A DNA stretch of 64,000 nucleotides. Source: Trichosphaerium sp. ATCC 40318. Its lineage: Eukaryota; Protista; Tubulinea. How positions within the stretch are numbered: position 1 is the first letter of the stretch; the number at the start of each line of letters is the position of its first letter. The stretch lies in NCBI GenBank assembly GCA_038496445.1, contig JALMLS010000281.1, positions 62,001 through 126,000 on the forward strand. Direction: 5' to 3'. Below the pieces are notes generated by a model. It searched no databases. It was not told the DNA's origin and saw only the letters and a list, made by a program, of their open reading frames with translations. Position numbers and translations under genes: made by a program. Of the stretch, positions 1,516-56,548 are shown piece after piece.

Positions 1516-2070
1516 TTACAACTCATCTGTTACTACACCTGCTGCTTTTATGTCGGCATTTCCTAATGATTCTATTCCTTTTTTAGTCACGCTCATACAG
1601 TATCCAATGTTGATTTTATGTACACCAGCCAATGCTTGAATGCCTTCATCTGTTACTCCTGATAGTGAATTGAACAGATTAATTGAATGTACACCTGCTA
1701 ATACTCTAAGGCATTCATCATTGACCTGAATACATCCAACAAGTGACACTTCTCTAACTCCAGAAATTTCTTTAAACCCATTGATTGTAAGTCTCCAGCA
1801 ATTATCAAGATTTATATATTTAACTCCATTTAGTTCCTTCAAGTGTTTGTCTCTCAGGTCAAGGTGGGAGCAGTTGATTTTAGTGTACCTCAACAAACCT
1901 TTGTATTTACCAATTATAGGTATATCTGAGAGTGATTTTGGCTTTATTGAAACATAACCAACATGTTGGTGAATGACACTTGACAATCCACGGCTCGTTT
2001 GGGCAATGTTGAACCTGGACTTTGAAAGAAACGAGATAATACAGCAAAGTACTTCAATAGGGAGCTCCAA
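1516..2070 (-). CDS. F-box/leucine-rich repeat protein (no intron in this ORF)
   Basis: N-terminal F-box LPIEVLCCIISFL, followed by LRRs of the VTDEGIQALAGVHKINI type. Paralogue of 9143-10821. Confidence 0.8.
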   Translation of the reverse strand: MELPIEVLCCIISFLSKSRFNIAQTSRGLSSVIHQHVGYVSIKPKSLSDIPIIGKYKGLLRYTKINCSHLDLRDKHLKELNGVKYINLDNCWRLTINGFKEISGVREVSLVGCIQVNDECLRVLAGVHSINLFNSLSGVTDEGIQALAGVHKINIGYCMSVTKKGIESLGNADIKAAGVVTDEL

Positions 2071-5439: not shown

Positions 5440-5842
5440 AGTGGTGTGTCTAAAGAATGGTATGAGAGTGGACAATTGAGGTTCAAGAGCATGTGGGTTG
5501 ACAACAAACAAAATGGTGAGAACAAGGAATGGTATGAGAACGGGCAACTAAAAGGACAGTGTGCATGGGTTGATGATAATCGGCATGGCGAAAGCAAGGT
5601 GTGGTATGAGGGCGGACAACTACGAGGACAGTTTGTTGATGATAACAGCATGGTGAATGAAAACATGGCATGAGAGCGGACAACTAAGGAACAGTGCATG
5701 TGTGTGGGTTGATGGTAAACCGCATGGTGAAAGTAAAGAATGGTATGAGAATGGACAACTTGCTGAACTAAGTACATTTGTTGATGGGAAACTGAACAAT
5801 GAAACAAAGGAATGGTATGAGAATGGACAAATAAAACAATAA
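5440..5842 (+). pseudogene. MORN-variant (EWYENGQL) repeat protein, frameshifted
   Basis: About five ~72-nt repeats of G-E-x-K-E-W-Y-E-N-G-Q-L are split across frames by single-base deletions near 5650-5665. Confidence 0.65.
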
Positions 5843-9142: not shown

Positions 9143-10821
9143 CTAAATATTAACTGAATGTACACCAGAAAGAACTTTTAACCCTTCAGGTGTAACATAT
9201 GTGTTATACAGATAGATCTTATGAACACCGACAATTTCTTTTAACCCTTTTTCTGTAAAGTCCCTGCAATCTGACAGAGATAAGGTATGGACGCCAGCAA
9301 GTGCTTTTAGCCCTTCATCTGTAACTGATGTGTTATCTAGAAAGATTGTATGAACGCCAGAAAGTGCTTGTAACCCTTTGTCTGTAACTGAGGTGTTAGA
9401 TAGATGGATTGTATGAACTCCAGAAAGTGCTTTTAGCCCTTCATCTGTAACTGATGTGTTATCTAGAAAGATTGCATGAACGCCAGAAAGTGCTTGTAAC
9501 CCTTTGTCTGTAACTGAGGTGTTAGATAGATGGATTGTATGAACGCCAGAAAGTGCTTTCAATCCTTCGTCTGTAACTGATGTATCATTAAGAGAAATGG
9601 TATGTACACCAGAGAGTGCTTTTATCCCTTTGTCTGTTATACATTTGCAACTATTAAGATACACAGTATGAACACCAGAAATGAACTTTAAGCCTTTATC
9701 TGTAACCGAGGTTCTAGGCAGAGAAATGGTATGTACACCGGTAAGCGCTTTTATCCCTTCATCTGTAACTGAGGTGTTAGATAGATAGATTGTGTGAACG
9801 CCAGAAAGTGCTTTTAATCCTTCATCTGTAACTGATGTGTTATCTAGAAAGATTGTATGAACGCCAGAAAGCGCTTGTAACCCTTTGTCTGTAACTGAGG
9901 TGTTAGATAGATGGATTGTATGAACTCCAGAAAGTACTTTTAATCCTTCATCTGTAACTGATGTGTTTGTTAGATAGATTGTACGAACGCCAGAAAGTGC
10001 TTTCAATCCTTCATCTGTAACTGATGTATTATCTAGAAAGATTGTATGAACGCCAGAAAGTGCTTTTATTCCCTTGTCTGTTATATGCTCGCAATTATAA
10101 AGATCAACAAAATGAACACCAGAAATGAACTTTAATCCTTCATCTGTAACTGATGTATTATTAAGAGAAATGCTATGTACACCAGCAAGTGCCCTTAATC
10201 CTTCACCGGTAACTGAGGTATAAGATAGATAGATTTTATGTACACCAGAAAGTACTTTTAATCCTTCATCTGTAACAGATGTGCTTGATAGATAGATTGT
10301 ATGTACACCAGAAAGTGCTTTCAATCCTTCATCTGTAACTGAGGTATTATTAAGAGAAATGGTATGTACGCCAGAAAGAGCTTTCAACCCTTCATCTGTA
10401 ACTGATGTATTATCAAGAGAAATGGTATGTACACCAGAAAGTGCCTTTAACCCTTCATCAATTAAAGGCTGTCCACATGAGCTAAGAATAATGAAACGAA
10501 CACCAGCAAACGCCTTTATAACATCATTAGACGTTCCTTTACCAGCAAGTTTGATGCGTGTGTGCTGGAGAGTACTTGAGTGTTTTAAAATTGCTTTTGC
10601 TTGGTCAACACTTGAAACCCAAATGCGACAGTATCCGATAATATCGTGAATGATAGAAGCAAGGCGATGACAAGTTTGAGAAGCGGCAAAGCGTGAGTTT
10701 GTTGTTTTACGTAAAATAAGAGCTAAAATCTCTGTGGGAAGGTCTAAAATGCTTGGCGTAGGTTAGAACAGTTTAACAAGTAATTTTGTTCGTACTTTTC
10801 GGTTAAGCTCTTTTCTGACAT
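9143..10821 (-). CDS. F-box/LRR protein with ~22 tandem 21-22 aa LRRs
   Basis: Short exon 1 (ATG 10821, MSEKSLTE) and one intron, then an open frame ILDLPTEILALILRK (F-box) running into the 414-aa ORF of LKALSGVHTIxLxNTSVTDEG repeats. Confidence 0.9.
9150..10470 (-). repeat. Coding tandem repeat, 63/66-nt unit
   Basis: Near-identical units such as ccttcatctgtaactgatgt...tatgaacgccagaaagtgcttt recur about 21 times. Confidence 0.95.
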
Positions 10822-35650: not shown

Positions 35651-37590
35651 TTATTTCTCTCCTACTTCAACAGTTGTTCCTGGAGCAAAGAAGTTGAGGA
35701 CTTCAGCTTTCTTTTCTGGTGTAAACTCGCTTTCTTTGTCGACTGGCCAAACATAGAATCCTAAGAGATAAACGTAAGTACTCTGTATCATTTGGTTGAC
35801 AATATCTTTACCTTGAATGGTTCCATTACTTCCTGGCCATGCCCAATGATTTACACCATAAACAACCATCTTGGCATTCGTATTCAGATTAACAGCAACA
35901 ATAGTTTTGTCTTTGTCGGATCTGGTCTTGTCAATCACGTGCCCTTTAAACAAAGTAAGAAACAGAACACAATTGCAAAAAAGAGAAAACTTGTACGATA
36001 CCTTTTGTATTGAAAGTGATTTGTATGCGAGGATGCTCATGTACAACACCATCATATTTTACTGCAGTAATTTCGTATCTACGCCATTTTGGAGAGTCTC
36101 CAGTTGGAGTTCTTCCGTCACTGCCATTCCCGGTATTGGATCCAGGTTTGGATCCAGGTTTCGATCCAGTATTAGATCCAGGTTTTGATCCAGTATTGGA
36201 TCCTGGTTTTGATCCAGGCTTCGATCCAGTATTAGATACTGGGCTAGATCCAGGCTTTGGTACAGGTGTTGAACCAGGGAAGGGTTCTGCGGGAGAATTG
36301 TTTGACCATGGTTTACCATCAGCAGTTTCGAATCGAAATAGTTGATTGTCGCCATCGTGGTTTGTCCACTGTTGTATAGCCTCACCAGGATTCTTGCTTG
36401 AGTTTGGAACCTCTAGAGCCTTACCAGAATTGACGTTGATAAGGCTGAAAACTGAAAAGACAGAGTTAGATGGTAAAAGACAAAAGATAAGAAGAACGTA
36501 CATCCATCTTTCTTTAGTTCAAGGTAATAAAGTTGATTATCATGGCCGTGATAATGATATTCAATAAGTTTAGCACCGTCTTTAGTGCTTCCTCCAGTCA
36601 CATCTATTCCCTATAGAAACGAAGTGTTATCAAGAATGCGAATACAAGTCAACAGCCACAAATATACACAATGCTATCTGAACATACCTTTCCAGAAAAC
36701 TTGACGAGAATGTTGTACGCTGGTTTTCCATTGACGTCCTTTTTCTTTTCCAAATAGAAGAGTTGAGAGTCATCACCAATCTTTTGAGTATTTTGGATGA
36801 TTGGTGTAAGATCGTCTTTCTTATCACCTTAAAAATTGACTTAGACCGTTGAAGTTCATCAATCCTTTTGTACCTCGTACATCGAGAACCAATCCACTGT
36901 TCTTGTTTTTAATGTAAATAGGTCCAATTTTATCAGGTAGAGGCAATGTAATAATATCAGGTACTGCCTTCAATTTGAATTGAATACATGGAGGTGCTGA
37001 TGGTGCCGAATTGACAGCTATTAATGGCCTACACAGTACCCATCCACCACCTTGCATATCCGTGAGCTTTGGTACAGGTACCATAACATAAGCTTCAGTG
37101 TTCACAAGGCGTATATTCGAATCTACAACCAAAGTCAACGAAGTTGTTTCTAAAACCTACAAAAAAAGATAAAAAACGTACACCCTGGGTGTTGTTTGTC
37201 ATCTTCAATCCACCAAAGTTGAAGATCAGTAAGTTTTTCGGCATGATCTTCAACTAAAAGACCAGTTTCAGGTTTTTCTCTTGTGCCCTGTTGCCTGACT
37301 TGTAGAATTTTGTCTTTCTTAAAAAAAAGTGTCAGATTTAAGAAGCTAAGCTTGCTGTAATGGACTAAAAGTATTTCCCAGCGTACATAGAAAGGGTCGG
37401 TAGTATTATAAACAGTGATTCTATAAGCAGGTTTTCCACCAACATCTCGCTCATGTTTGATTACCCACGCATGCAAACGTTGTTTGTTGTGCAGAGGCAT
37501 ATCGTTTATGTGCCAACGTGTATGACCTAGGCCAAGACCATAGTCGTTAATACCGACAATATAGGAAGGTGTGCCAAGAGATTTTTGCAT
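35651..37590 (-). CDS. Ricin-B (beta-trefoil) lectin protein, copy A: N-domain, one lectin module, (GSKP/GSNT)n linker, C-domain
   Basis: IKNKNSGLVLDV, GAKLIEYHYHGHDNQLY and LINVNSGKALEVPNSSKNPGEAIQQWTNHDGDNQLF are QxW-type subrepeats. Paralogue of 43542-46960. Confidence 0.85.
36130..36270 (-). repeat. 12-nt coding minisatellite (GSKP/GSNT linker)
   Basis: Units gatccaggtttg / gatccagtatta repeat about 9-10 times. Confidence 0.9.
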
Positions 37591-43541: not shown

Positions 43542-46500
43542 ATGCAAAAGTCTGTTGGTATCCCATCGTATATTGTCGGCATTAACAACTTTGGTCTTGG
43601 CCAAGGCACTCAATCTCGCTGGCACATAAACGATATGCCTCTACATAATACAACCCGCCTACATTCGTGGGTCGTTTCGCATGAGAAAGATGTTGGTGGA
43701 AAGCCTGCTTATAGAATCACTGTTTACAACCCTACCGACCCTTTCTATGTACGCTGGCAAATACTTTTAGTCCTCGCAGCGAGCTTATCATCTTTAAACT
43801 GACACGTGTTTTAGAAAGACAAAATTTTACAAGTCAGGCAACAAGGCACAAGAGAAAAACCTGAAACTGGTCTTTTAGTTGAAGATCATGCCGAAAAACT
43901 TACTGATCTTCAACTTTGGTGGATTGAAGATGACAAACAGCACCCAGGGTGTACGTTTTCTATACTTTCTTTTTTTGTATGTTTTAGAAACAACTTCGTT
44001 GACTTTGGTTGTAGATTCGAACATACGCCTTGTGAACACTGAAGCTTATGTTATGGTACCTGTACCAAAGCTCACGGACATGCAAGGCGGTGGATGGGTA
44101 CTGTGTAGGCAAAAGATAGCTGTTAACGCTGATCCATCCTCCCCTCCATGCCTTCAGTTCAAATTACAAACAATTCCAGGTTATAAGCCTACACCTGATG
44201 ATGGCGACAAAAACAAACCTAACCCTGATGATGGTGACAAAAACAAACCTAAGCCTGGCGATGGTGACAAAAACAAACCTAACCCTGGCGATGGTGATAA
44301 AAACAAACCTGATGATGGTGACAAAAACAAACCTAACCCTGACGATGGTGACAAAAACAAACCTAACCCTGACGATGGTGGCGATGGTGACAAAAACAAA
44401 CCTGGTATCAAGTTACCTCTACCTGATAAAATTGGACCTGTGTACATTAAAAACAAGAACAGCGGATTAGTTCTCGATGTGAGAGGTGCGAAACATTTGT
44501 TAACTTCAACGGATTTATTTCTTACTTGATTGTTAAGGTGACAAGAAAGACGATTGTACACCAATCATCCAAAATACTCAAAAGATTGGTGATGACTCTC
44601 AACTCTTCTATTTGGAAAAGAAAAAGGACGTCAATGGAAAACCAGCATACAACATTCTCGTCAAGTTTTCTGGCAAGGTACGATTAAAAAAATGCTCTTT
44701 GGATTTTTTCTCATTGCGTACCGCTTTGTCGGCCTTTCTAACATGTTTGGTTTAGGGAATAGATGTGAATGGAGGAAGCAAAATCGATGGAGCAAAGCTC
44801 ATTGAGTATAAGTATCACGGCCATGATAACCAACTTTACTACATTGAAGTAAAGAAGGACGGATGTAAGTTCTACTATCAGATTTTGTTTATTTTGTTTA
44901 TTGACTAACTATCTATCAGTTTTCAAGCTTATCAACGTCAATTCTGGTAAGGCTCTAGAGGTTCCAAACTCAAGCAAGAATCCTGGTGAGGCCATACAAC
45001 AGTGGGCAAACCACAATGGCGACAATCAACTATTTCGATTTGAAACTGCTGATGGTAAACCATGGACAAATATTCCTGATCCAAAACCAAAGCCCAGTCC
45101 AAAGAACCTTGACCTTAAGTTACCTCTACCTGATAAAATCGGACCTGTATACATTAAAAACAAGAACAGCGGATTGGTTCTTGATGTGAGAGGTATGAAA
45201 CGATTAGTGAACTTCAATGGATTTAATTCTAAGTCAATTGTTAAGGTGATAAAAAAGACGATTGTACACCAATCATCCAAAATACTCAAAAGATTGGTGA
45301 TGACTCTCAACTCTTCTATTTGGAAAAGAAAAAGGACGTTAAAGGAAAACCAGCATACAACATTCTTGTCAAGTTTTCTGGCAAGGTACGATTAAAAAAT
45401 ACTCTTTGAATTTTTTCTCATTGGCTTACCGCTTTGTCGGCTTTTCTAACATGTTTGGTTTAGGGAATAGATGTGAATGGAGCGAGCAAAATCGATGGAG
45501 CAAAGCTCATTGAGTTCCACTATCATGGCCATGACAATCAACTTTACTACATTGAAGTAAAGAAGGACGGATGTAAGTTCTTTGTATATTTTGTTTATTG
45601 ACTAATTGTCTATCAGTTTTCAAGCTTATCAATGTCAATTCTGGTAAGGCTTTAGAAGTTCCAAACTCAAGCAAGAATCCTGGTGAGGCCATACAACAGT
45701 GGGCAAACCACAATGGCGACAATCAACTATTTCGATTTGAAACTGCCGATGGTAAACCATGGACAAATATTCCAAAACCAAAGCCCAGTCCAAAGAACCT
45801 TGACCTTAAGTTACCTCTACCTGATAAAATCGGACCTGTATACATTAAAAACAAGAACAGCGGATTGGTTCTTGATGTGAGAGGTATGAAACGATTGGTT
45901 ACTTCAACGGATTTATTTCTTACTTGATTGTTAAGGTGACAAGAAAGACGATTGTACACCAATCATCCAAAATACTCAAAAGATTGGTGATGACTCTCAA
46001 CTCTTCTATTTGGAAAAGAAAAAGGACGTTAAAGGAAAACCAGCATACAACATTCTCGTCAAGTTTTCTGGCAAGGTATGATTAGAAAATGACAGTTGCT
46101 ATCATAATTTTTACGTTCAATGGCATTTCTGACATGTATTCAGGGAATAGATGTTAATGGAGGAAGCACAAGTGATGGAGCAAAGCTCATTGAGTATAAG
46201 TATCACGGTCATGATAACCAACTTTATTACATTGAAGTAAAGAAAGATGGATGTAAGTTCTTCTATCTTGTAATTCGTTACTTACCAACTCTTTTTCAGT
46301 TTTCAACCTTATCAACGTCAATTCTGGTAAGGCTCTAGAAGTTCCAAACTCAAGTAAGAATCCGGGTGAAGCCATACAACAGTGGACAAACAGCGATGGC
46401 GACAATCAACTATTTCGATTCGAAACTGCAGATGGTAAACCTTGGACAAACAATCCAGACGCAACTAGTGGTGATGTAGATGCCGGAAGAACTCCAACTG

Positions 46501-51614: not shown

Positions 51615-52360
51615 TTGCTTGGGATGGCCATTACAGGCAACGGTATACGTAAACATACTATTTCGGAGCGGCTAACAAAAAAAGCGTCTTTACAGAACGA
51701 TCTTTTACGCCTTCTCTTTGAGCTACAGCTTGATATAATAGATTTAGACGTAGTGCTACGCCAAAAGTGGCCAGAGCTATCCAAACACACTACTACAACA
51801 AAATTCGATGGCGAGCTGAGAAAATACGGAAAATGGCTGCGTGCTATTACTAAATTGCTCTACACCGCACATTGTTCAGCAGAAGACTTTTTCACGCGGA
51901 AAATGCAATAGCGAACAAGCTGTACTCTAGTGGCCAATTAGAACAGCTATGTTTTTATGTTGAAGGTAAACTTGAAGGAGGGTACACAGCCTATCATGAA
52001 AATGGACAACTGTTGGAAAAGGCTAACTACGTTAATGATGAGCTGGTAGGAGATAGTTGTACATTTAATGACTTGCCTACATGGACAAGATTCGATCGCG
52101 ATTATGCGTCACTGTATCAAGTACACTGCAACTGAACCATCCAGATATCATCTTATTCTAACTGTACAAGTAGTCGTGTGTTTAATAGGCAGTGGGATTT
52201 CACAAATCACTGCAAGATGGATGGTACTGTTTAGCATAAGTCAGTAAAGAAGGAAAGGGTTACAATTGATACAAAAATGTTCAAATGTTCAACGAGGGAT
52301 TTTATAGCGATGGTAAAAAGATAGGAGAGTACAAGATGTGGTATGACTTATATTGTATAA
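51615..52360 (+). pseudogene. MORN-variant repeat gene, disrupted
   Basis: YSSGQLEQLCFYVEGKLEGGYTAYHENGQLLEKANYVNDELVG and GFYSDGKKIGEYKMWY are separated by in-frame stops and frame changes. Confidence 0.6.
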
Positions 52361-52437: not shown

Positions 52438-55400
52438 TTACTTCATGTTACTCTCGAGACTAGCAATTCGGGCTAGCAGCTGGGCATTGGTTTTTTGCAG
52501 CTCTTCTAATTTGGCATTGGACTCTGCAATGATGGTTTTGTGTTCTTCCAGTAGTTTCTCAATTTTTCCAGTTAAAAATGATTTTGTGTACTGGTGTTTG
52601 CTGGTCGGTTGATTTGGCTTTGCAGCTGCCCACAATTTTCTTTGTATTAAATTAGAGCACCATAATGTTTTGTGTTATAGCTTACCGAGTATTAGTAAAA
52701 CCATTGTCATCAGACAACTCATCTGACTCATTATCCATTGATTTTGAAGGGTTTTTGTTTTCTTGCTTTTCATTTTCAGTTGTTTTGGTACTCTTGGAGA
52801 CACTTTTTTTTTTAATTGATTTGCTAGTGCTTGGCCTCCTCGGTTTTTGTACAACCTTAACAACATATCGTGCGACAGCCTGAACATCTAAAGTATATAT
52901 TAACAAGGCATTGGTACTCAATTTAGACTATTACCCTGAGCCACAACCAACTCATCACGTGGATACTTATCAACACATTCTTTCACTGCTTCCCCCAATC
53001 TATTCACCACTGCATAGTGACTTTGGTATCCAGGTTTGATAGGTCTACCCTCAAAGCTATTTTGGTCTCCAGGCTTTTCTATTACCTAGTAGCAGTAAAT
53101 AATGAGTTTACAACCATTCTTTGTGTACAGGATACACATTCCCAGGTGTAACAAAGCTCAAAATTAATGTTTTTTCAGTAGCCTTTGGGTCATAAGAGCA
53201 AGCATATGTGATACTGCTCTAGTAAAGTATTAGAAAAGTGGTCAAACAGTATTTACATCAAAAAGAAAAGTTAGAGATTAGTTGACGGCTAAGTTGGGAC
53301 CGGACAACTACTGCTAGAGAATAGTGTTTGTATTCGTACCGTGAAGTATATTCCTTGTCCATAGTATCCGGCATCCAATGCACTTACAGTTCCAAATCCA
53401 GCTTTTACAATACTTTCAGCAGCCTCAGCACTTGTTCCATGGACCATTAATACAACCGGCAACTGAGTAATTAGTCAAGCGAGAAACTATATTGAACTGT
53501 ACCTCGGAGTTGCTATTAGTCAAGCTTTTAGGAGAAATCAGAGATGTAAACTTGTCAGAAATATTTTTCCGTGCGTCACCCTTCCAATCGCGTTTACAAA
53601 ATAACTTGGGTAGTTCTCTAAAATTACAGTAAGTACTCAATCAAGAGTCAAATTTCATAAAAAACTTATGTAAACGTACTGATGCCTGTGTTTAAGTATT
53701 TTGTTGTACATCCCAAAGTTTCGAAGCAATACGTCATTGCAAACAAGATGTGCTGATACAACCCTTACTTGATTGTATCCATGCATTTTAGACATCTGTT
53801 CCCTAAGAAACTCAAGTTCTCTTTTAGCCACTTTATCTTTATCAGCCATATTAAAAATATCCAGTGTTCGGAAATGTGTTGCTTTTTCAATGAACCCCCT
53901 TTTACAACTATTAAACAAACAATAAGGAGGTTATATACACACTGATTGTTGGATCTATCCCAGCTACAAGCATAGTCTAATCTTGGGTTTAATTCCCAAG
54001 AATTGTTGCTTTTTAGTCCTAGTTGAGAAGTCAATTGGTAGGGAAAACAGCAATGCTTGTACCTGCTTTAGTTTCACCTGGTTTATTATTTGGTACAATA
54101 GGCTGAATAGCACATGTGCCACGTTTACATATGAGGGATGTGTCAGTATTAAATGTCTAGCAATAGTTAATATTGTATTGATTAGTTGTTATGTACAGAA
54201 TTTTCATCGTCAAGAGTGTGCTGAGCACATAGACTGCATATGAAGTCCTCATCAAACGCTGTACAACATTAACCATAAATAGAAAACTTATTCTAGCACT
54301 TACATTCCTCTAAAGTTGGTTGAATGGAGTTTAGACACCATCCTTGTTTCATACATATTTGATCAACTGTACCAGCTTGTAGTTCACAGCTCCAAATATC
54401 ATCTGGTAGATCACACAAGATACCTTCCATTAATTCTCCTTGTTGAACCCAAAAGGTCTATAAATGATATGAGTTATAACAAACTGAGTATCTTGTGTAC
54501 CGAAGATTGAACAAATATGCGATTGTAAGAACAAATTAAGGTACAAATACCTTTTTGTATTGCAAGTTTAAAATAAGAACGTGTTGGCTGTGTATCGTTA
54601 GTCAAGAGTTTTTGAGGATTAAAAGATGTACCAAGTACTGTAACCACTTTGCAAGATTACATCTCCATTGTGGGTAGTTGTCTATATGTGCACAAGAAGA
54701 CCATAGCGATTGGCTTGCTTGTTTATTAGTCGGAAAGTGTGACAACAAAGTTTCAAAGACTTTGGTGTATGCAGGATCATTATCAACCACCTTAATTAAG
54801 ATAGTCTGAATACCAAACTTTCGGTTGCTCATAGTCCGTGAAAAAACATCACTTGCATTAGATAATATAAGAAACACAGAGGTATTTTCCAATTGTCCTG
54901 ACAATAGTGTTAATGTTTCGCTTCAGTATTTTATGTAGAATGACCTGCATAAAGTAACGGCGTCCATCCTTTGTTGTCTATTGCTTCTACATTTGCACGT
55001 GATTTAATTAACTCCTCAACAACCGCACTGTGTCCATATTTGGCTAGTAGAGTATGAATAACATAAAATCAAGACGTGTAGTACCAGCAAGATGTAATGC
55101 TGTCCGGCCATCAGTATCCGCTGCCTCAATTTTTACTTTTGATCTTACCAATACTGTAACAATATCGTTGTGTCCATGACTTGCTGAGACGTGTGAGTAG
55201 CAAGTATTGTTATAAAATAAATATTGTACCAGCATAGTGTAATGGTGTTTGACCTTTTTTATCTGTAGCGTCGATGTTGCCTTTGGCTTTGATTAATAAT
55301 CTAACAATACTTACGTGTCCCGTTGATCCTAAAGTGAAATACGTTTAGATTAAAGGTATGTGTGGTATGAAAATACATTGTATAATGTGTACCTGCAAGA

Positions 55401-56548
55401 TGTAAAGGTGTACGTCCATTATCATCAACGGCATTGATATCTGCTTTTGCTTCGATTAATAATTTAGTAATACTCGCATGTCCACATGCTAAAAAATGTG
55501 AGTAAAATTTATACAGTCGTACGTTTACAACATTACCTGCAACGTGTAAAGCTGTCTGTCCTTTGTCATGGTCTACAGAGTTAATATCTGTATTTGCTCC
55601 AAGCAGTAGTCTAACAATTCTTGGGTGTCCGCGAGAACCTTAGAAATGTGAGTAAGATACATTTATAGCAATGTTGTACTGGCAATATGTAGCGCTGTCC
55701 ATCCATTATTGTTCGCATCGTTTGTATGTACATTTGCTGCAACCAAGAGTCTGACAATATCAACACGTCCACACAGCGCTGAAAAATGTGAGTACGTACT
55801 TTAATACTTACAATTTGTACCCGCAACATGCAAAGGTGTACATCCATTCGCATCTGAGGCGTTGACATTTGCATTCGCTGTTATCAACAATGTAACAATA
55901 CGTTTGTATCCACGAAATGCTGAGAGGTGAGTAATGTGCTTTGTAACATTTTATACTTACAATCTGCACCTGCGAGATGTAAGGCTGTCCGTTTTCCATC
56001 AGTCGCAACATTGACATCTGCTTTTGCGTTGATCAATATTTTGACAATCTCTTTGTGATTCTTCAATACTAAGAAATGTGAGACAAATTTCATTTTACGA
56101 CCACGATCAATCGGTGTACCGGCAACATGTAAAGCTGTACATCCATTGTCATTTGCAACATTGACGTTTGCGTTTGCTTTGGTCAATAACCTAACCATAC
56201 GTGTCCATCCACGAGATACTGATAAGTATTAGGAACTCAAAGTGTACATTTACAACAATATTATACCTGCAACGTGTAAAGCTGTCCATCCTTCTTTGTT
56301 TGTAGCACCAACATTTGCCGTTGAGCATAAACACATCGATACAATAATTGGCGAATTGTCATGTGCTAAATAATTAGTTTTGAGTTTTACTAACGTTTCA
56401 ACAAACCTGCACACATAAGGATATCATTGGCTGTGTCGCTTGTACGTAGCATCCTCTTTAGTTTCTTTCCTAGAAGTTGTCAATAAAGAAGTTCTATTAT
56501 CTCGATGGTACTTGTGATAGTATTGTAACGTCGTCGCTGTCGAAGCAT
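52438..56548 (-). CDS. Ankyrin-repeat protein with a C-terminal PARP-like ADP-ribosyltransferase domain and coiled-coil tail
   Basis: Ten ankyrin exons (G.T.LH.A) at 54945-56365. ART motifs MVHGTS, DAGYYGQGIYFTSSITYA and DELVV. Basic/acidic tail and coiled coil KIEKLLEEHK...LESNMK*. Confidence 0.85.

Follow-up and report, generated by a model that had tools for sequence, protein, structure and literature searches.

Analysis of a 64,000-nucleotide (nt) window of Trichosphaerium sp. ATCC 40318 (contig JALMLS010000281.1; the window is the whole stretch of DNA analysed, and all coordinates below are based on it) identified ten consecutive minus-strand exons, each encoding one ankyrin repeat, in a gene whose 3' part encodes a PARP-like catalytic domain. 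The anatomy of the gene, the ankyrin identity of its repeats, their multiplication as exon-plus-intron units and the age of the copies are established. We consider it fairly probable that the locus is an intact gene for an ankyrin-targeted ADP-ribosyltransferase (ART), with an array that grew by duplication of exon-intron units and is constitutively spliced.

Structure and origin of the ankyrin exon array

The array was read directly from the sequence and is laid out as follows:

54945..56365, minus strand: ankyrin array, ten exons and nine internal phase-1 GT-AG introns
56365-56267, 56218-56120, 56068-55970, 55919-55821 and 55778-55680, minus strand: ankyrin exons 1-5
55638-55537, 55488-55393, 55328-55230, 55183-55085 and 55043-54945, minus strand: ankyrin exons 6-10
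55489..56119, minus strand: introns after ankyrin exons 2-6, which have the 3' tail (T)ACTCAC(ATTT)...AG in common (motif count)

A first-pass annotation of this DNA had claimed ten minus-strand ankyrin exons, and all of them were recovered where it had placed them when the exons were extracted from the window. The sizes it gave also held: eight of the ten array exons are 99 nt long, one is 102 nt and one is 96 nt. The intron position that it had described, after the LH.A codons, was found throughout: the codon following L-H/L-x-A is split after its first base, which places all of these introns in phase 1. The nine internal introns of the array are 41-64 nt long, and every intron flanking an ankyrin exon is of the GT...AG type.

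The spliced array measures 990 nt and has a single open frame, which reads as ten canonical ankyrin repeats; the other two frames are rich in stop codons. When searched singly, each of the ten exons matched the Pfam Ank/Ank_4 profiles (E 1e-7 to 4e-4), and all did so in identical register: exon residues 2-23 correspond to Ank profile positions 12-33 and residues 24-32 to positions 1-9. Because of this shared register, the intron falls at profile position ~10/11 in every repeat. Since the exon register is offset from that of the repeat, and the end of exon 0 and the beginning of exon 11 contribute as well, the ten exons encode approximately 11 structural repeats.

Ankyrin repeats (Pfam PF00023) are defined as tandem 33-residue helix-loop-helix-hairpin units with the signature G-x-T-P/A-L-H-x-A ... 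G-H ... V-x-x-L-L, and by their profile matches the encoded units conform to this definition. The signature residues T, L and A are invariant (10/10 array repeats), and H is present in 9/10. A repeat search of the window returned 10 copies, all in one orientation and spaced 140-163 nt apart. This ten-exon pattern is far above chance expectation.

The exon plus its intron had been proposed as the unit of duplication, and the introns themselves support this proposal: six of the array introns have a 3' motif in common that none of the gene's other introns carries. The comparison was made between the 11 introns that flank ankyrin exons and the remaining 12 introns of the gene. Over the last 20 nt, the array introns showed 46% ungapped identity versus 39-40% (permutation p 0.014), and a core set of six array introns reached 63% identity over the 3' ends. 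The motif CTCAC was found close to the 3' end in 6/11 array introns and in 0/12 of the others (hypergeometric p 0.005). The shared tail that had been ascribed to most of the introns is therefore real, but "most" was too broad for a CTCAC carried by six of 11. The sequence TACTCACATTT occurs exactly in three array introns and CTCACATTT in four; besides the introns after exons 2-6, the intron at 55184-55229 also carries the (T)ACTCAC(ATTT)...AG tail.

This tail is probably a branch site plus pyrimidine tract. The possibility that TACTCAC is the general branch-site consensus of the genome was considered and rejected: the 12 other introns of the gene carry CTAAY/TTAAY-like motifs, and the search for the intron motif elsewhere, which the first-pass annotation had suggested as a check, showed no enrichment of TACTCAC in the window outside the array. 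Five copies lie in the 1.5 kb of the array and five in the remaining ~125 kb (both strands), the latter number being within the expectation from composition. Hence, the most plausible source of the shared intron tail is common descent of the exon-plus-intron units, and the TACTCAC...AG tail was probably retained for branch-site function.

The copies are old and have not been homogenised. DNA identity among the ten repeats is 54-75%, with 44% identity at third codon positions, and protein identity is 27-61%, with a mean of 42%; with a minimum score of 80, Tandem Repeats Finder (TRF) left the array undetected. The ancestral unit would have been a 99-nt exon together with a short intron, placed after the first base of the codon following LHxA, and this unit would have been multiplied in tandem through unequal crossing-over. 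Every array copy is symmetric (phase 1-1) because only in-frame copies survive tandem duplication. The copies would then have diverged to ~42% protein identity, so that the one-repeat-per-exon layout could be seen as a record of the growth of the array.

Gene model and PARP-like catalytic domain

The gene model was extended by hand from the array and then checked by script, with GT-AG introns throughout. It consists of 24 exons forming a single open reading frame (ORF) of 942 amino acids (aa), which links the ankyrin array to the PARP-like domain. The suggestion that the array feeds into an ART domain was thus borne out to the extent that both lie in one 942-aa ORF. The order of the encoded parts is N-cap, ten ankyrin exons, orphan linker, Cys-rich stretch, PARP-like domain, K/S-rich tail and coiled coil. 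The parts outside the array are:

56407..56452, minus strand: exon 0, an ATG plus 15 codons, with half an ankyrin repeat (N-cap) at its end and a phase-1 donor
54551..54897, minus strand: exons 11-12 (54897-54639 and 54587-54551), the remainder of the last ankyrin repeat followed by the orphan linker
53943..54457, minus strand: exons 13-16, a Cys/His-rich stretch with 9 Cys and 1 His
52935..53907, minus strand: exons 17-21, the PARP-like catalytic domain, assigned from the Pfam match of exon 19 and from motifs by eye
52438..52887, minus strand: exons 22-23, the last PARP strand, a K/S-rich low-complexity tail, the C-terminal coiled coil and the TAA stop

The PARP-like domain was recognized by its putative NAD+-binding triad. 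Exon 19 (53462-53340) holds the His of HGTS and the Tyr of GIYFT (in GQGIYFT), and exon 21 (53085-52935) holds the Glu of D-E-L-V-V. In the gene model the three residues H-Y-E are collinear with the PARP signature, on a by-eye reading against the known signature. Exon 19 also matched the Pfam PARP profile (PF00644) over profile positions 50-90, with 21.3 bits and an E value of 2.2e-4; the cut-off for whole proteins is 26.7 bits.

One result weighs against this assignment: significance was reached by one of the five PARP exons only, and the rest were assigned from motifs by eye. Exons 17, 18, 20 and 21, searched singly, gave no significant PARP match in Pfam or the PDB. In the PDB search with exon 19, the sole PARP found was PARP10, with an E value of 0.08 that is at chance level and alongside equally weak matches to aldolases. 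Recognition of exon 17 in the ESM Atlas was low.

Upstream of the array, a TGA lies in frame 30 nt 5' of the exon 0 ATG, and no signal peptide was apparent when the N-terminus was inspected by eye. Downstream, exon 11 is 259 nt long and starts in a repeat-like manner, without an intron at the repeat position; the linker encoded by exons 11-12 may consist of degenerate capping repeats. A Pfam scan of the linker gave no match. Compared with 1.84 billion representative proteins, exon 11 retrieved four spurious bacterial repeat proteins (TPR, beta-propeller and type IX secretion system, T9SS) and no true relative; the same search shows that this library lacks the genome's own protein. AlphaFold, given the exon 11 fragment alone, returned a predicted local distance difference test (pLDDT) score of 50. 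Exon 11, exon 17 and the PARP core were also used to scan viral and metagenome collections, where no relatives were found, and Rfam and tRNA scans of the window found nothing.

The Cys/His-rich stretch, to which the exon 16/17 junction adds one His and one Cys, is possibly zinc-binding, judging from its composition. Scanned one by one, exons 13-16 matched no Pfam family, zf-UBR being among those tested. The boundary of exon 16 with its 35-nt intron is the least certain and weakest part of the gene model. At the 3' end, exons 22-23 gave weak matches to Pfam families of the coiled-coil type: GIT_CC (E 4.8e-4), bZIP_2 and DivIC.

Two features of the introns of this gene (52438-56452, minus strand) were also observed. 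The donor is GTAC at 13 of the 23 introns, an unusual preference. Intron lengths cluster at 40-51 nt, and the shortest exons measure 37 nt.

Fusions of ankyrin repeats with PARP domains have had several independent origins (PMC2964712, PMC4245714). Tankyrases, with the order ankyrin-SAM-PARP, are restricted to animals (PMC2964712). Clade-1A proteins, with the order ankyrin-WGR-PRD-PARP, occur in Dictyostelium, C. elegans, Saprolegnia and Mucoromycota, and other combinations are found in Naegleria and Monosiga (PMC2964712, PMC4245714, 10.64898/2026.07.25.740670).

Orthology to tankyrase or to the clade-1A proteins would account for the N-terminal ankyrin repeats, the C-terminal PARP domain with H-Y-E and the presence of an oligomerisation module. 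We regard such orthology as very improbable, since SAM, WGR and PRD were unmatched on any exon at E values up to 10, in a piecewise test of limited power, and since the only PARP matched in the PDB, at chance level, was neither a tankyrase nor PARP1. In the exon-by-exon scans, SAM was not found on the linker exons (E up to 10) and neither WGR nor PARP_reg was found on exons 11-18. With these three domains undetected, the gene was therefore filed as a further independent architecture, outside both families.

The resemblance to Tankyrase 1/2 (PARP clade 4) lies in the N-terminal ankyrin array, which in tankyrase selects the substrate, in the C-terminal H-Y-E PARP domain and in a self-association module located between or after these two. 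In the place of SAM, which was undetected here, are an orphan linker and a Cys-rich stretch; the gene further differs from tankyrase in the position of its coiled coil after the PARP domain and in its very divergent catalytic domain. With the clade-1A proteins (Dictyostelium ADPRT3, C. elegans PME-5 and the giant proteins of Mucoromycota) it shares the character of an independent, non-animal ankyrin+PARP fusion; it differs from them in its short catalytic domain and in that WGR and PRD were undetected. Judged from its sequence, the gene appears to be intact and to encode a PARP-type ADP-ribosyltransferase that is targeted by ankyrin repeats and represents a new architectural variant.

Diversification and repeat-per-exon systems

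The first-pass annotation had proposed that the gene is an immune receptor that diversifies its recognition. This proposal is unsupported at the locus: the repeats are old and unhomogenised, the outer face varies at least as much as the binding face, and the window contains neither spare exons nor a paralogue. The check for orphan ankyrin exons, in which the repeats and the whole protein served as tblastn queries over the 64 kb, returned the ten exons only. The same method found no paralogue of the gene in the window, and no reverse-strand or inverted ankyrin copies were present there, all ten exons being on the minus strand.

For the analysis of variation, the binding face was defined by positions 2, 3, 5, 13, 14 and 33, the ones that are randomised when ankyrin binders are designed. 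On the outer face of helix 2 (positions 17, 18, 21 and 25), the mean entropy over the ten repeats was 2.54 bits, compared with 2.16 bits on the binding face and 1.08 bits elsewhere. Variation is thus found on both exposed faces and is not focused on the binding groove, as in any ankyrin protein whose repeats have diverged. A homogenised hypervariable array was not what we observed: mean identity of the repeats is 42%, the maximum is 61%, and the binding face is not the most variable one.

The ankyrin solenoid tolerates the loss of a repeat. A recognition repertoire could, on this general ground, be obtained from one gene if its ten cassettes were alternatively spliced in different combinations or recombined somatically. 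With symmetric exons (phase 1-1) of 96-102 nt, any subset of them remains in frame. We consider this explanation highly unlikely. Phase symmetry follows automatically from tandem duplication, and skippability in frame is a by-product of any array that arises by tandem duplication of exon-intron units. The splice sites of the array are canonical and a good branch-like motif is present in most of its introns, as expected of constitutive exons, and the window contains no inverted or spare cassettes.

The frequency of introns in the array does not set it apart either. In the non-ankyrin part of the gene, a coding sequence of 1.8 kb is interrupted by 12-13 introns, with exons of 37-260 nt. As the rest of the gene is nearly as intron-dense, one intron per 99 nt is unexceptional here.

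The gene could also belong to a family of ankyrin-PARP intracellular sensor-effectors that has expanded in this lineage and is diversifying, and could be one of its older, stabilised copies. In such a family, the cassettes would let repeat number and order change on an evolutionary timescale, through unequal crossing-over or gene conversion between paralogues. Duplication of exon-intron units is demonstrated, the linker has no relative among the 1.84 billion representative proteins, as would be the case for a fast-evolving lineage-specific family, and precedents exist in the LRR/TPR exons of brown algae (PMC3341825, PMC11378527). Against this stand the window, which lacks a paralogue, a spare exon or a reverse-strand exon, and the repeats, with identities of 27-61% and variation that is not concentrated on the binding face. 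We therefore hold membership in such a family to be unlikely, although less so than a repertoire generated from the single gene. The more extensive form of this idea, in which a large lineage-specific ankyrin-PARP family exchanges single-repeat cassettes between paralogues, perhaps with alternative splicing, and has ADP-ribosylation as its output, seems to us more doubtful still.

The brown-algal ROCO-LRR and NB-ARC-TPR candidate receptors are similar to the Trichosphaerium gene in several respects: each repeat has its own exon, the exons are equally long and symmetric in phase, and the repeat array is joined to an effector or signalling domain (PMC3341825, PMC11378527). The brown-algal loci contain spare, pseudo and reverse-strand repeat exons, as well as recent paralogues that differ in exon counts (PMC3341825), and their variation is supported by expressed sequence tags (ESTs). 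In contrast, neither a paralogue nor any spare, pseudo or reverse-strand exon is present in the 64-kb window. A PARP domain is the effector here, an NTPase that in brown algae, and the exon phase is 1-1 here versus 0-0 there.

The vertebrate ANK1, ANK2 and ANK3 proteins are cytoskeletal adaptors, encoded with long introns and without an enzyme domain, and one repeat per exon is said to be the rule among them. In ANK1, many repeats reportedly lie each on their own 99-nt exon, with the intron at a fixed position of the repeat. The long array with repeats on their own 99-nt exons would thus be shared with the membrane-binding domains of these genes, whereas the short introns and the enzyme domain of the Trichosphaerium gene would not.

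In fungal NLR proteins, the ANK/TPR/WD repeat domains with high internal conservation consist of near-identical repeats with hypervariable binding positions. These domains resemble the present case in the combination of an array (here ankyrin) with an effector, and diversification by unequal crossing-over has been proposed for them. The repeats described here are different, being 27-61% identical and variable on both faces.

Several other repeats were observed in the window. An intronless ORF of 414 aa (9143-10459, minus strand) contains ~20 leucine-rich repeat (LRR)-like units of 21 residues (…SGVHTI.L.NTSVTDEGLKAL…). TRF reported for it a 63-nt period with 20.5 copies and 75% matches, and a 444-nt super-period at 81%. 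This ORF is far more homogenised than the ankyrin array and is contained in one exon; therefore, one repeat per exon is not a general habit of the repeat genes of this genome. A second ORF (1516-2070, minus strand; 184 aa) has an F-box-like N-terminus followed by LRR-like units related to those of 9143-10459.

MORN-like repeats (…G.Y..Y.ENGQL…) were seen at 51872-52135 on the plus strand, where they belong to a gene that converges on the 3' end of the ankyrin-PARP gene. A second MORN-like set is located at 5513-5760, where TRF found a 72-nt period in 3.5 copies. Short in-frame tandem repeats occur at 44193-44380 (plus strand) and 36135-36254 (minus strand), with PDDGDKNK and GSKPGSN units.

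Predicted function and significance

Tankyrase-type ankyrin+PARP fusions are the textbook example of substrate-targeted ADP-ribosyltransferases. The product of the Trichosphaerium gene would be a cytosolic or nuclear ADP-ribosyltransferase directed to its substrates by the ankyrin solenoid. Its ~11 ankyrin repeats would bind a partner protein, its divergent PARP-type domain, with the H-Y-E triad, would move ADP-ribose from NAD+, and the C-terminal coiled coil would probably allow oligomerisation. Catalysis, partner binding and oligomerisation, together with constitutive splicing, are inferred properties.

The organism appears to be missing from the protein and metagenome collections searched. 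If the family of which this gene may be an older member does exist, the interesting biology would be in the family and not in this locus: a large set of ankyrin-PARP genes whose cassettes are shuffled would be a candidate for an innate-immune repertoire of a protist, and a family exchanging such cassettes would add a new, repeat-based type to the known immune repertoires, with analogues in the LRR/TPR shuffling of brown algae and in the fungal NLR arrays.

As a predicted targeted ADP-ribosyltransferase, the gene adds another independent architecture to the ankyrin+PARP fusions, composed of an ankyrin array, an orphan linker, a Cys-rich stretch, a PARP domain and a coiled coil. In addition, the locus illustrates cleanly how a repeat array originated by tandem exon-intron duplication, with the branch-site region of the introns still recognisable.

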